From the NCBI GenBank assembly GCA_002269645.1, contig NIVC01001206.1:171850-235849 (forward strand): 64,000 nt of DNA, given 5' to 3'. The stretch's first letter is position 1; every line of letters starts with the position of its first letter. The notes beneath the pieces are model-generated. The model made no database searches and was not told where the DNA came from. It saw nothing but the letters and a program-made list of their open reading frames with translations. This document shows, one piece after another, positions 40,501-46,500 of the stretch. A program made the translations under genes and the position numbers. Source of the stretch: Macrostomum lignano. Taxonomy: Eukaryota.

Positions 40501-43500
40501 TATCGCAAGGGATAGACGATCGATAAATGGGTGTGCTCAAACACTTAGAACAGTACGCATGGCCAGTACATTAAAACGAGTCTGAGACTCTGAGAAAAGC
40601 GGAGGGGTGGCTAAAACTTGGATAAAAATTTAAAAAATAGACAAGGCAAAAAAAGGCAAAAAAATAGACAAGGTAAATATCAAATGCTCAGAGCAAAAAT
40701 TGCAGGTGCACCGTACACAGTGTCAGAAAAATGAATAAAAAAGCAGAGAAAAAAATAATCAAAATAAATCAAAATAAAGCCAATGCAGAAAAATCACAGA
40801 GGGGAAAAATAGCAGTAAAAGAGGCTTTGTACAGGCGTCAAAAAGGACCTAGTTGGCAGGACCGAGCCGACTATGACAGAGCAGGGTCCGGAGGCTCCTC
40901 CCCTTGGTGTAGGCGGGCAGCCTTGGTGCTGCACCAGATTCGACATTAGCCCGAGAGAGAGAGAGAGAGAGAGAGAGAGAGAGAGAGAGAGAGAGAGAGA
41001 GAGAGAGAGAGAGAGAGAGAGAGGTAGAGAGAGAGGTAGAGAGAGATAGAGTGAGAGAGAGAGAGAGTCAGTCGCGGCGCATTGAGGGCCAACCGGTTTC
41101 CAAGCCTGTGGACTCTCCGTCAGGCCACAAAATTTTCACATTCTCAAACAACAGTCTGACAAGTAAGATCAGCGAAAAAACTGTGAAGCGTTAAGCATAA
41201 TTTCGAGAGCCCTTTAGTAGTCAGCTCAGGGTGCAAAAAACCGAGCTAGGAACAGGGCAGGTGGCAGGGTTGGGCCACTGCTTGCCCCTGTAATTATGCA
41301 AATGAATATCGTTAGTCAGGTGGGTAATTGATGCGGCTGATGGACACGCCTCGACGTCATAAAAAACAAATAGCTTAACAGAAAGTTGCACGCGGAGAGG
41401 TGAGCTAAAAGTGCAGAAACATTTTAATTTGTTTGTTGCCGAGGAGGCTGAGCGGCATCTGTAATTTACTGCTGCTTCCCAAGGCAATGCTGACGATCCA
41501 GGGCCCCTGTGTGGAGTTTGTTGTACAGAGCGAACTCTCTAGCATAGCATCTGCTGTTGACTGATAGCCATGATTGAGTCGGTGGCTTCAGACAATTGAT
41601 GTAACCACGCTCTGGTCGCGGGATAGGGCATGGGAACTTTTTCGAAAGTGCCTCCTATCCCGTGCACCCTCTGCACAGAGCTGTCGAGACTCGGCCAGGT
41701 CTCCGCCCAGGCCTGGAGACTCCCGCTCTGCTGCACCCCTCCTACTGCCTTGGCTCCGTCTCCCCTGCCGCCACACCTGCCTTTCCGGAACTCCCTGTCC
41801 CTCTCTGTACCCTCCCCTCTACCTTATCTCCCCTGCACTCCACCCTATTCTTCTTGTACTTTCCCTTTCCCCCCTCTTTTTGTCTCTCTCTGCACTCTTT
41901 TCCTGCGCTGTCCCCTCCTTCTCTGTGTCTACTTACAGTATTTGGTGTGCTCACCGTCTCCCCATCCCCTCCCAAACTCCCAAACGGTGACGCAAGTCGT
42001 GTGACCCCTTCTTCCCCCCGATGACTCATCGATGACTGATCCCCCTCTCTTGCGCAACTTTTTCTCATGCCATTGTTCTCCTCCCCAAATTTCTCATGCG
42101 ACACCCACCCCACCTCCGCTTCTATTGTTCTCGTTTTTGATTCTTTTGTTCTCTCGACCCCCACCAATTATCACATTTTCTCCGATTTTCTCTTTCTTTT
42201 GTTCTCGTTTTCGCACCTAATTATCACCTTTTCTCCAATGTTTACTTTTCCATTGTTCTCAGTTTTCCCCAATTATCCCCGATTTCCAATTCCTTTGTTC
42301 TCGACCCCAGCCCTATTGTTCTCAATGTTTGCTTGCGCAACACTTTCGCGACCACCCGCTGCGCCAATTATCCCCCCACCCCACCTCCGGATTGCGCAAT
42401 TTCCCGATTTCTCATGTTGCTATGCCGGTCTCATGCTTCTCATCATGACTCATTCTGACGTCATTCTGCCGGCAGCCAATCAGAGAGAGGGAGCCATGGT
42501 AACGACCTTGAGGAGGCGGCTGTGAGGTCTATAAAAGGAAGCGATTTCGGCATGAGAATCCTCAACTTCTCCTCTCCTCGTCCTTCTTTGGACTTGCTGT
42601 CAGATTGAGTTCTGACCCATTCGTCTATAAGACGAATCCCTGCCGGTCCGCGGTCTGTTACTGCCAAGTTATCCTTAGCTCCCCAAGTGAGCTCGCCTAT
42701 CGGCCTGCGGTCTGATACCGCCCAGCATCATCAGCATCGCCTGATCTACATCAGCGCTTCGTCGCTCCAGCGCATCGCCGCTTCACTGTCTGCCTGACTG
42801 CAGCCTACAGCCACCCTCGGTCACTCCGCCTCTCTCTCTCTCTGTGCAGCTGCCGGTAAGTTCCTGTTTCTAATTTGTGCTCTAATTGCCTTTGCTTATC
42901 CGGGGTTTGCCTATTTTCCATTGTCTGATTAGAGAGCTGAGCCAATTGTGATACCGTATCTTTTGCTGTATTTTACTCAATAGTGAAGCCGCCTAATTGC
43001 CTGATTATTCGCCTAAGGGCCTAATTATTAACTATTAACTAACTTCATCATTATTCAATCTTTCACCATCATTTAACTCATGGCTTGCTAAGCCTTTCTC
43101 CCTTGGCAAAGCATAAGGAAGTTTGGGTAAGCTAATGGCCTCTCCCCGTGCAAAGCCCGCCTGTGAGTGCGTGCTGCGGGGCCGCGTGTGCGTGCAGTAG
43201 AGGGATTAGCGAGTCTTGGCACAGAATGGCAGTAGGAAGGTTGCAACCCCATGCTAACGCGTCCCTTCGCCCTGAGCAATCTAAACTGTAGACAGTACAT
43301 GTTCGCCTCATACTACTCTTAGTAATCAAAGTCGCAAGCCAGCCTCGCTCACAGCCACAAAGGATCCCCTGCTGAGAAATCCTCCAGATTGAGCCCAGAG
43401 TTCCCGATCATGCCCCAAGCAGAGTCCCTGTACTCGGCTGCATGCGTCTCCCCTGTTAGCCTAAATCCCCTGGTAACCAATCCAGGCGGGGCTCTAGCCT

Positions 43501-46500
43501 CGAGAGGTCTGGTAGAAAGATCCAGGTGCGCCAGGTCACATAGAGTGGTGGCAGCCACTCGGTCATACCATGACCGAGTGACCAACTATTGCACCTTGGC
43601 TACAGGTGGGGTCCATGTGGGTCCTTGGCCCTCTGGTCACGAAGCGCTACCAAAGCTACTAATCATGTGGGCGGGACAGTCTGGTGCTGGAGGTCCGTCA
43701 GGTCATTGCCCGGTCATAGGCAGCCTACGGTCATCGCCCCCTCTAGCCAAGCGTTCGTCTCTCAATAGGAGCGGACAGGCGACAAGGGCGGTTACATCAC
43801 AATAAACATGTGTGTACGACAGTTGACTGTCAGTGTCAGTTGACTGCCAGTGTCATTTGACTGTCAGTGTCAGTTGACTGTCAGTGTCAGTTGACTGTCA
43901 GTGTCATTTGACTGTCAGTGTCAGTTGACTGTCATCAGTGTCAGTTGACTGTCAGTGTCAGTTGACTGTCAGTGTCAGTTGACTGTCAGTGTCAGTTGAC
44001 TGTCAGTGTCAGTTGACTGTCAGTGTCATTTGACTGTCAGTGTCAGTTGACTGTCATCAGTGTCAGTTGACTGTCAGTGTCAGTTGACTGTCAGTGTCAT
44101 TTCACTGTCAGTGTCAGTTGACTGTCAGTGTCAGTTGACTGTCAGTGTCAGTTGACTGCCAGTGTCATTTGACTGTCAGTGTCAGTTGACTGTCAGTGTC
44201 AGTTGACTGTCAGTGTCAGTTGACTGTCAGTGTCATTTGACTGTCAGTGTCATTTGACTGTCAGTGTCATTTGACTGTCAGTGTCAGTTGACTGTCAGTG
44301 TCATTTCACTGTCAGTGTCAGTTGACTGTCAGTGTCAGTTGACTGTCAGTGTCAGTTGACTGCCAGTGTCATTTGACTGTCAGTGTCAGTTGACTGTCAG
44401 TGTCAGTTGACTGTCAGTGTCAGTTGACTGTCAGTGTCATTTGACTGTCAGTGTCATTTGACTGTCAGTGTCATTTGACTGTCAGTGTCAGTTGACTGTC
44501 AGTGTCAGTTGACTGTCAGTGTCATTTGACTGTCAGTGTCAGTTGACTGTCAGTGTCAGTTGACTGTCAGTGTCAGTTGACTGTCAGTGTCAGTTGACTG
44601 TCAGTGTCAGTTGACTGTCAGTGTCAGTTGACTGTCAGTGTCAGTTGACTGTCAGTGTCAGTTGACTGTCAGTGTCAGTTGACTGTCAGTGTCATTTGAC
44701 TGTCAGTGTCATTTGACTGTCAGTGTCAGTTGACTGTCAGTGTCAGTTGACTGTCAGTGTCAGTTGACTGTCAGTGTCAGTTGACTGTCAGTGTCAGTTG
44801 ACTGTCAGTGTCAGTTGACTGTCAGTGTCAGTTGACTGTCAGTGTCAGTTGACTGTCAGTGTCAGTTGACTGTCAGTGTCAGTTGACTGTCAGTGTCAGT
44901 TGACTGTCAGTGTCAGTGGACTGTCATCAGTGTCAGTTGACTGTCATCAGTGTCAGTTGACTGTCAGTGTCAGTTGACTGTCAGTGTCAGTTGACTGTCA
45001 GTGTCAGTTGACTGTCAGTGTCAGTTGACTGTCAGTGTCAGTTGACTGTCAGTGTCAGTTGACTGTCAGTGTCAGTTGACTGTCAGTGTCAGTTGACTGT
45101 CAGTGTCAGTTGACTGTCAGTGTCAGTTGACTGTCAGTGTCAGTTGACTGTCAGTGTCAGTTGACTGTCAGTGTCAGTTGACTGTCAATGTCAGTTGACT
45201 GTCAGTGTCAGTTGACTGTCAGTGTCAGTGGACTGTCATCAGTGTCAGTTGACTGTCATCAGTGTCAGTTGACTGTCAGTGTCAGTTGACTGTCAGTGTC
45301 AGTTGACTGTCAGTGTCAGTTGACTGTCAGTGTCAGTTGACTGTCAGTGTCAGTTGACTGTCAGTGTCAGTTGACTGTCAGTGTCAGTTGACTGTCAGTG
45401 TCAGTTGACTGTCAGTGTCAGTTGACTGTCAGTGTCAGTTGACTGTCAGTGTCAGTTGACTGTCAGTGTCAGTTGACTGTCAGTGTCAGTTGACTGTCAG
45501 TGTCAGTTGACTGTCAGTGTCAGTTGACTGTCAGTGTCAGTTGACTGTCAGTGTCAGTGGACTGTCATCAGTGTCAGTTGACTGTCATCAGTGTCAGTTG
45601 ACTGTCAGTGTCAGTTGACTGTCAGTGTCAGTTGACTGTCAATTCTTTTCCCCCACAACAAAGACCCCGCCAACCCCATCCTCGCAGCCTACGTGATGAC
45701 TATCAACTCGCTCACGCTGATCTCCATGGCGGCCATCAGACTCCGCCAGAGCCTCATGCAGGCCCGCGGAGTCAGGGAGCTGTCGGACCGCTGCCTGCTG
45801 ATCTGGGTCGCCTGCATCTGGCTCGCCTCCGCCGCCCTCTGCAGCCCCGTGCCGTTCATCTACACCGTCACGGAGACGCGCCTGATCTTCCCCGACCCCG
45901 GCAGTTCCAACGGCAGCGTCACCGCCTACTTCTATTACTGCCACGAGAAGGAGCTGAACACCACGGAACGCTACGCATTTCACCTGGTGACCCCGCTGCT
46001 GCACTCCGTCATCCCGGCCGTCTTCATCGCCTGCTGCTACTGCCACATCGCTATGGTCATCGCTTCGCGCGGCGGTCGCGCCTGGGGCAGCGCCGGCAGC
46101 CACCGCGCCGAGTCCGAAGCCGCCGGAGCTTCGGTGGCTCTGCAGCGAGCGCAGCAGCAACAGCAGCATCGCGAGCTGTCGCATCAGTTCAGCCATCAGG
46201 TCCAGCGGTACAGCTGTCTGAACTCCCACCGGCCAGTCCGTGGCAGCGGCGGCAGCACGGGCGGCGGCGGCAGCAGCGTCAGTGGCGCCCCCAGCCAGCA
46301 GGCGATGCGAACGCAGAAGCGAGCCATCACCACCGTAGTGGCGCTGGTCATCAGCTTCGTTGTCTGCACCCTGCCGAAGCACGCCGTGCTGCTGACGTTG
46401 GACTTTCTGCCCAAACTGGAGCAGCGGGAACCTGGCCAGCCGGAGGAATCCGCCGGGGTCGCCTTCATCAACGACCTGCTGCCGTTCTGCCAGCTGCTGA

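Follow-up and report, generated by a model that had tools for sequence, protein, structure and literature searches.

Introduction

Solo long terminal repeats (LTRs) of Ty3/Gypsy, BEL/Pao and retrovirus-like elements begin with TG and end with CA, carry a short terminal inverted repeat (TIR), are flanked by a 4-bp target-site duplication (TSD) and combine an enhancer repeat with a TATA box, with no internal region adjacent to them. All of these features are shared by a 2,203-bp element found in Macrostomum lignano, at positions 41597-43799 of a 64,000-nt stretch of contig NIVC01001206.1 (positions 171,850 to 235,849, forward strand; the whole stretch is called the window below and all coordinates are counted from its first letter). 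The element lies in an intron of a G protein-coupled receptor (GPCR) gene. It differs from the usual solo LTR in being long, at 2.2 kb, with about 1.24 kb located 3' of the putative start site, and in having no internal AATAAA or ATTAAA. Our preferred reading, to which we assign a probability of roughly 0.55, is that a solo LTR lies at this site with its own expression signals and with a latent competence for a transcript that includes the last exon of the receptor gene.

In deltaretroviruses and foamy viruses, the major splice donor is located within the R region of the LTR, and R-U5 is far shorter than the corresponding portion of the present element. The element recalls these LTRs in having a consensus donor inside the repeat, 3' of the start and after an AUG-free leader; this is a resemblance only, and neither similarity in sequence nor a retroviral gene was detected. 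The pseudo-LTRs of Penelope-like elements, common in invertebrates, contain a short spliceosomal intron of about 75 nt and hammerhead ribozymes; we know of no Penelope-like element with TG...CA inverted termini and a fixed 4-bp duplication. Here too there is a likeness, a repeat-borne putative promoter followed by a mini-intron candidate of about 75 nt, but the present element has TG...CA ends and a 4-bp duplication, and no hammerhead was detected in it.

LTR-derived intronic promoters of truncated proteins and truncated GPCR isoforms are both already well known. The intronic LTR16A1 promoter gives rise to a truncated ACE2 that is unstable and non-functional (Ng et al., bioRxiv 10.1101/2020.07.24.219139). 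The present locus resembles it in having a sense intronic element that is probably an LTR, a proposed stimulus-responsive promoter, host exons downstream and an N-terminally truncated membrane protein as the predicted product. It differs in that the host gene encodes a GPCR, in an invertebrate, and the element is unclassified; moreover, for LTR16A1-ACE2 measurements exist of the start site, the junction, the inducibility and the instability of the protein, whereas here all four are predicted from the sequence. Highly truncated GPCRs are mostly retained in the endoplasmic reticulum (ER) and dominant-negative in vitro; alternative splicing accounts for most such variants, whose mRNA or protein has been detected (reviewed by Wise, 2012, PMC3477067). 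As with these isoforms, the product considered below would have fewer than seven transmembrane (TM) helices and come from a GPCR gene, but it is a hypothetical product of alternative initiation that would begin in the middle of TM3.

Boundaries of the element

The element and its borders comprise the following features.

41593-41596 (no strand): target-site duplication CAAT, 5' copy
41597-43799 (+): 2,203-bp insertion with TG...CA termini, a probable solo LTR, sense to the host gene
41597-41606 (+): 5' terminal inverted repeat, TGATGTAACC
43790-43799 (+): 3' terminal inverted repeat, GGTTACATCA
43800-43803 (no strand): target-site duplication CAAT, 3' copy
43801-43806 (+): AATAAA in the host flank, overlapping the target duplication and followed by GT-rich CATGTGTGT

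The insertion sits in the host intron that splits TM3, in the same orientation as the GPCR gene. Its inverted repeat is perfect over 10 bp and matches at 13 of 15 positions when extended to 41611. When the whole window was scanned for elements that combine TG...CA ends, an inverted repeat of 10 bp and a duplication of 4 bp, 41597-43799 was the sole such structure returned, and a general repeat search recovered the same inverted repeat independently. Under a block-Markov null, the window as a whole would yield 0.34 TIR-plus-TSD structures per 64 kb, a value that is not small. This figure is inflated by low-complexity blocks and was replaced by a bracketing null, in which sequences of local composition were scored for a structure at least as good bracketing a fixed point (the TATA box) within 6 kb. 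Such structures occurred in 0.5% of the trials (P = 0.005, inverted repeat and duplication jointly). Because the window-wide null is not small, the evidence for the boundaries rests on the bracketing argument. Given the TIR, the TSD, the uniqueness of the structure and the bracketing probability, 41597-43799 was taken to be an insertion, and we hold with considerable confidence that it is a mobile element. The reconstructed pre-insertion site reads ...TCAGACAAT/AAACATGTG...

A different account would dispense with insertion: the region could be an internal promoter of the host gene or a nested non-coding unit, starting near 42560, containing one or more small introns and ending at the AATAAA at 43801, with the TIR and the CAAT repeats being coincidental. 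The AATAAA/GT-rich site is placed exactly where such a unit would be expected to end, the sequence 3' of the element's splice donor (see below) is AT-rich and intron-like, a second copy was found nowhere (window, metagenome, viral and prokaryotic scans), and the window-wide null of 0.34 leaves room for coincidence. The bracketing P of 0.005, on the other hand, argues against chance; the TG start and CA end are those of integrase substrates, repeats of enhancer-like units, as seen here, are what U3 regions typically contain, the unit's open reading frames (ORFs) show no coding signal, and Rfam gave no family match. We therefore consider this account unlikely, and of the explanations that would replace an LTR it is the one that we favor least.

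A promoter-like module within the element

The left half of the insertion contains a cluster of regulatory motifs.

41950-42540 (+): U3-like enhancer/promoter module
41988: bZIP-type site TGACGCAA
42022 and 42446: AP-1 sites, TGACTCA
42050, 42333 and 42392: bZIP-type octamer TTGCGCAA
42134-42239: degenerate 53-nt repeats carrying TTGTTCTC and AATTATC
42456: cAMP response element (CRE), TGACGTCA
42476: CCAAT in an NF-Y-type context, CAGCCAATCAGAG
42490-42503: X-box-like GGAGCCATGGTAAC, including a GTAAC half-site at 42499
42530-42536: TATAAAA

A first-pass annotation of the window, made by a model from the sequence, had listed AP-1, CRE and CCAAT motifs, an RFX half-site and a TATAAAA at 42530, and each was recovered exactly where it had been placed. 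Seven bZIP-type sites are found in the 591 nt of the module (one CRE, two AP-1, three TTGCGCAA and one TGACGCAA) versus 0.12 expected, and all three occurrences of TTGCGCAA in the window fall inside it. TTGTTCTC is present seven times (0.05 expected) and AATTATC four times (0.03 expected), both partly within the degenerate 53-nt repeats; the single TATAAAA compares with an expectation of 0.003. Together with the splice signals described below, these features exceed chance. Judging purely from the motif matches, the element may be inducible by cAMP or stress.

When a metagenome collection was scanned with the AP-1/CRE/CCAAT pattern, one unrelated contig was recovered (L001, Ga0114940_10020488), in which the three motifs occur in the same order and with the same spacing at 232-266 on the minus strand. 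Apart from the motif pattern, no blastn similarity links this contig to the element; since an unrelated sequence shows the same motif order, such a compact promoter grammar recurs independently.

In the host intron 5' of the element, octamer ATGCAAAT (41296-41303) is followed by ACGTCA and the TATA-like CATAAAAAAC (41354-41367). This may represent a second promoter-like cluster. Near it, at 41179-41260 on the minus strand, lies a weak, sub-threshold match to the Rfam family snR36 (E 0.015).

Class of the element

TG...CA ends, a very short TIR, a 4-bp duplication and an internal TATA promoter together make up the classic LTR signature. The element has a TG...CA short inverted repeat, and its target duplication, at 4 bp, is within the 4-6 bp required of a solo LTR. 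The LTR label is further suggested by the repeat-bearing enhancer region with its TATA box, by the AUG-free leader and by the lack of a second copy in the window, where self-blastn with 41100-43820 returned the element itself alone. No RT, IN or gag Pfam domains and no long ORFs were detected in the host intron, and the ORFs of the element are likewise devoid of Pfam domains. With no second copy in the window, no RT/IN-like ORF nearby and no sequence resembling a primer-binding site or a polypurine tract in the flanks of the element, the "solo" state proposed in the first-pass annotation fits. A full-length or paired retroelement in the window was considered and rejected, as self-blastn found only the element and the ORFs of element and intron contained no Pfam domains.

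Coding and structured-RNA candidates inside the element were also examined. Its ORFs have a GC content at third codon positions (GC3) of 0.52-0.56, versus 0.78-0.89 in the host exons. A 159-codon frame at 43326-43802 was rejected as a coding gene (GC3 0.54, no frame-specific codon signal, no Pfam match). At gathering score, no Rfam family was found in the whole window, and a structured RNA or ribozyme in the element was rejected after a permissive Rfam search gave only two sub-threshold chance matches. The search for hammerhead ribozymes in 41000-43900 yielded none at E <= 1. A search for tRNA genes found none.

Several observations, in addition to the window-wide null, weigh against a solo LTR. 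Other copies of the element were found neither in the window nor in the metagenome, viral and prokaryotic collections, where chance matches were the only hits: scans of viral contigs either came back empty or hit no more than a 19-mer, by chance, in large contigs about 166 kb long, and the prokaryotic genome scan for relatives gave no match. The plus strand of the element contains neither AATAAA nor ATTAAA. Thirteen poly(A) hexamer variants were looked for on the plus strand 3' of the putative start, and none was present; their sole match in the element is the TATAAA of the TATA box. Where a promoter and a poly(A) signal are expected in an LTR, the module and the TATAAAA are there, and the nearest AATAAA, at 43801, is in the flank. 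Finally, from the putative start site to the element's end there are about 1,240 nt, a very great length for R-U5.

Some of these points would suit a mobile element of another class, one that carries or has captured a promoter and a first-exon fragment: a non-autonomous, Ginger- or Sola-like cut-and-paste element with short TIRs and 4-bp duplications, or a Penelope-like pseudo-LTR with an intron. The element is defined solely by its terminal inverted repeats and duplication, has no internal poly(A) hexamer, includes an intron-like segment and is atypical in length for an LTR. However, the lack of a hammerhead ribozyme, a Penelope-like feature, and of any Rfam family argues against a pseudo-LTR, no transposase remnant was found, and the ends, the very short TIR, the 4-bp duplication and the internal TATA box conform to the LTR signature. 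Such an origin appears doubtful, although slightly less so than a non-mobile one. On balance, solo LTR is the best label for 41597-43799, with chances somewhat better than even. The claim of a sense LTR starting at 41597 thus stands insofar as a discrete insertion with LTR hallmarks is present at that position; it is a probable LTR, for which neither relatives, in the collections scanned, nor an internal poly(A) hexamer were found.

The host receptor gene

The receptor gene was reconstructed from two coding exons.

37191-37446 (+): coding exon with the ATG, TM1, TM2 and the first third of TM3 (...C78-KILLSVD85)
37447-45687 (+): intron of 8,241 nt, phase 1, interrupting TM3 and containing several tandem arrays and the 2.2-kb element
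45688-46607 (+): last exon, encoding the remainder of TM3 through TM7 and the C-tail, with a TGA stop at 46605-46607

The upstream exon ends in phase 1 at the donor ATG/GTGAGT, and the junction 37446/45688 joins G to CC to give Ala86. Both exons match Pfam family 7tm_1, the upstream one over profile positions 2-64 (E 1.5e-10) and the last one over positions 96-260 (E 2e-16). The joined protein, 391 amino acids (aa) in length, aligns without a break across the junction to the NPFF1, NPY1 and QRFP receptors, its best matches in PDB (E ~1e-14). Since the join is phase-matched, the alignment unbroken and 7tm_1 present on both sides, the acceptor 45687/45688, already indicated in the first-pass annotation, is correct. 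The two-exon structure of a divergent peptide-type GPCR is thereby established. The reading frame remains open 5' of 37191 and a good acceptor is located at 37119; a further 5' exon is therefore possible, which would fit the earlier designation of the last exon as "exon 3".

By its 7tm_1 domain and its similarity to solved receptors, the host gene encodes a rhodopsin-class (class A), peptide-receptor-like GPCR. Residues N1.50, D2.50, C3.25, R3.50, W4.50 and P5.50 are conserved; other motifs are divergent, with AIR in place of DRY, CTLP in place of CWxP and SPVLY in place of NPxxY. Six hydrophobic segments score above threshold, and TM7 (around SPVLY) scores below it. The third intracellular loop is long and rich in Gln, Gly and Ser. 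Despite its peptide-receptor-like affinities, the protein has an Asp at 3.32. An exhaustive HMMER search of 1.84 billion representatives showed that the closest proteins are about 31% identical, the top ones being from Macrostomum lignano; a word-index protein search with the last exon gave no match. GC3 in this exon is 0.89.

Leader and splice signals in the element

The portion of the element 3' of the TATA box, and the interval separating it from the last exon, contain the following.

42560-42855 (+): putative non-coding leader exon, about 296 nt and ATG-free, with its start site placed from the position of the TATA box
42856-42861 (+): consensus 5' splice site CCG/GTAAGT (junction 42855/42856)
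42856-42932 (+): candidate AT-rich mini-intron of 77 nt, acceptor tgattAG/AG, a rival to the long-range splice
43820-45641 (+): minisatellite with some 106 copies of a 17-mer, CAGTTGACTGTCAGTGT, separating the element from the host acceptor

The TATA box is followed by one ATG at 42552, which probably precedes the start site, and the next one is at 43080. The ATG-free stretch, given in the first-pass annotation as about 300 nt before the donor, continues past the donor to a total of 528 nt, the longest such run on the plus strand of the window outside tandem arrays (P ~0.004 at an ATG frequency of 0.0107 per nt; hand arithmetic, exp(-0.0107 x 528)). The predicted fold of the leader is weak (z-score -1.97). 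Two features of the leader may be mentioned: a 30-nt direct repeat at 42639-42725, with copies CCTGCCGGTCCGCGGTCTGTTACTGCCAAG and CCTATCGGCCTGCGGTCTGATACCGCCCAG 57 nt apart, and a perfect small hairpin, TTCGTCTATAAGACGAA, at 42620-42636.

The donor at 42856, described from the outset as strong, has a position-weight score of 6.45 (99.9th percentile), which ranks it in the top five of the plus-strand GTs in the 64 kb and makes it equal to the host donor at 37447. The question is with which acceptor it would pair. The host acceptor at 45687 has 15 of 20 pyrimidines and CAG; five acceptors within the element (42932, 42983, 43322, 43459 and 43746) have 14-15 of 20 pyrimidines followed by YAG and reach the same simple score. 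The first of them corresponds to the AG at 42931-42932, which had been pointed out, at about 42930, as a potential competitor. The sequence 42856-43100 is AT-rich (34-42% GC) and resembles a verified 233-nt intron of a neighboring gene (2784-3016). In view of the five equivalent acceptors and this AT-richness, short-range pairing appears at least as likely as a 2.8-kb jump to the host exon. The minisatellite that intervenes includes 194 AGs, every one of them with a weak pyrimidine tract. The AATAAA and CATGTGTGT at the element's 3' edge could serve as a terminator of element-initiated transcripts; five such hexamers in the host intron are evidently read through by host transcription.

A strong acceptor-like site (17 of 20 pyrimidines and CAG, AG at 42848-42849) lies 6 nt 5' of the GTAAGT donor, the two together spanning 42829-42861. 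Such an arrangement could in principle allow a 6-nt microexon, CTGCCG, to be included in frame in the host mRNA, inserting Ala-Ala within TM3.

The predicted truncated receptor

A transcript spliced from the element to the last exon would encode one product.

45696-46607 (+): hypothetical truncated ORF of 303 aa (Met89-Asn391), with GTGATGA as the context of its start

In the predicted chimera, the AUG encountered first (45696) is 9 nt into the last exon and in the host frame, with G at -3; both this AUG and the length of the ORF agree with the first-pass annotation. That annotation had further described the product as having five TM helices, a generous count. Met89 falls in the middle of TM3, so that about 14 of its 24 or so residues would be kept and about 10 lost. 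TM1, TM2, Cys78 (3.25, the disulfide partner) and Asp85 (3.32) would be missing as well. As read from the ORF, Met89-Asn391 amounts to 4.5 TM helices and falls short of a 5-TM receptor. It would probably misfold and, by analogy with highly truncated GPCRs, would be retained in the ER or unstable.

Taken in full, the model of the first-pass annotation is a functional one: a co-opted LTR promoter, inducible by cAMP and AP-1, whose transcripts undergo the 42855-to-45688 splice and direct synthesis of a 303-aa receptor that modulates the full-length form. The layout allows it, with a sense element, a TATA box, an ATG-free leader, a top-ranked donor and a good host acceptor; the first AUG is in frame and has a purine at -3, CRE, AP-1 and C/EBP-type sites are strongly enriched, and both truncated isoforms driven by LTRs and truncated GPCRs with dominant-negative action have precedents. 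Yet five nearer acceptors have an equal simple score, the nearest giving a 77-nt mini-intron, and an AATAAA with a GT-rich element precedes the host exon. The in-frame ATG is nearly automatic: any transcript entering the coding exon would be expected to use the AUG located 9 nt inside it. Motif matches do not demonstrate inducibility, and a product without Cys3.25, Asp3.32 and half of TM3 is doubtful as regards correct insertion and folding. The model as a whole seems improbable to us. Its strongest form, in which a signal-responsive bZIP/NF-Y/TATA promoter was co-opted, a 296-nt leader is joined to the last exon and the resulting half-receptor, Met89-Asn391, adjusts how the full-length protein signals or reaches the surface, we regard as very improbable; it would amount to an inducible and self-limiting GPCR switch of LTR origin in an invertebrate.

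On the preferred solo-LTR reading, a retroelement inserted by its integrase would have been reduced by LTR-LTR recombination to a 2.2-kb solo LTR, in sense orientation, in the intron that splits TM3. The regulatory features would be the element's own U3-like signals, namely a repeated bZIP, SOX-like and NF-Y enhancer and a TATA box, together with an ATG-free structured leader; the consensus donor would have served subgenomic or leader splicing of the element, and all of these would be preserved in the solo copy. As the element is sense-oriented and its donor as strong as that of the host, it would in principle be competent to start a transcript joining the last coding exon, with translation then initiating at Met89. 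The solo LTR could thus act, as a latent possibility, as the start of a shortened receptor transcript. If the promoter fires, the donor would more probably pair with a nearby acceptor within the element; the AATAAA/GT-rich site that adjoins the 3' edge of the element may also terminate the transcript. For the host, the insertion would be a liability or a latent resource, a potential source of intronic promoter activity, cryptic exonization and, at best, a few LTR-to-exon chimeras. What the sequence itself shows is where the element begins and ends, how strongly the motifs are enriched, how good the splice sites are, and the exon structure and frame of the host gene; the LTR class, the start of transcription, the activity of the promoter, each choice of splice site and what becomes of the protein are inferred.

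If the junction is real, the locus would show, in an invertebrate, how the promoter of a retroelement gives rise to a truncated isoform of a receptor. Its present value is one of annotation: a discrete transposable-element insertion with intact-looking promoter and splice signals, in sense orientation, in an intron of a coding region. Such sense placement is usually selected against, and it could disturb host splicing, for example via the 6-nt in-frame microexon.

Other features of the window

The window is extremely rich in minisatellites; its coding exons have the high GC3 given above and at least one verified intron is AT-rich. Arrays with a period of 17-22 nt and a TGTCAGT-type core are found at 20449-21284, 21987-22365, 24371-29924, 30666-31769, 32209-32851 and 43820-45641. 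The largest extends over 5.5 kb (252 copies), and another starts 20 nt after the element. These arrays look like a related family that has spread through the locus. An interstitial telomere-like repeat, (CCCTAA/CCTAAC)n, occupies 579-685 with about 18 units.

A cyclic-nucleotide-binding domain is present in each of three long open frames at 1875-5561 (+), which are probably exons of a single gene. Reading frame and splice sites confirmed the intron at 2784-3016, which is 233 nt long, AT-rich and in phase 0. In an indexed protein search, the cyclic-nucleotide-binding ORF had no homologue at E <= 1e-10. An indexed protein search with an open frame that has BTB/POZ and BACK domains (Kelch-like), at 62519-63451 (-), likewise found no homologue.

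Exons of a class B GPCR (secretin/adhesion-type, 7tm_2) are located at 8575-12010 (-). As they are on the opposite strand, the window contains two unrelated GPCR genes. Adjoining a class B exon, two inverted arrays of a 16-mer (8420-8524 and 8570-8664) are 92% complementary over 105 nt and form a long palindrome capable of folding into a hairpin.

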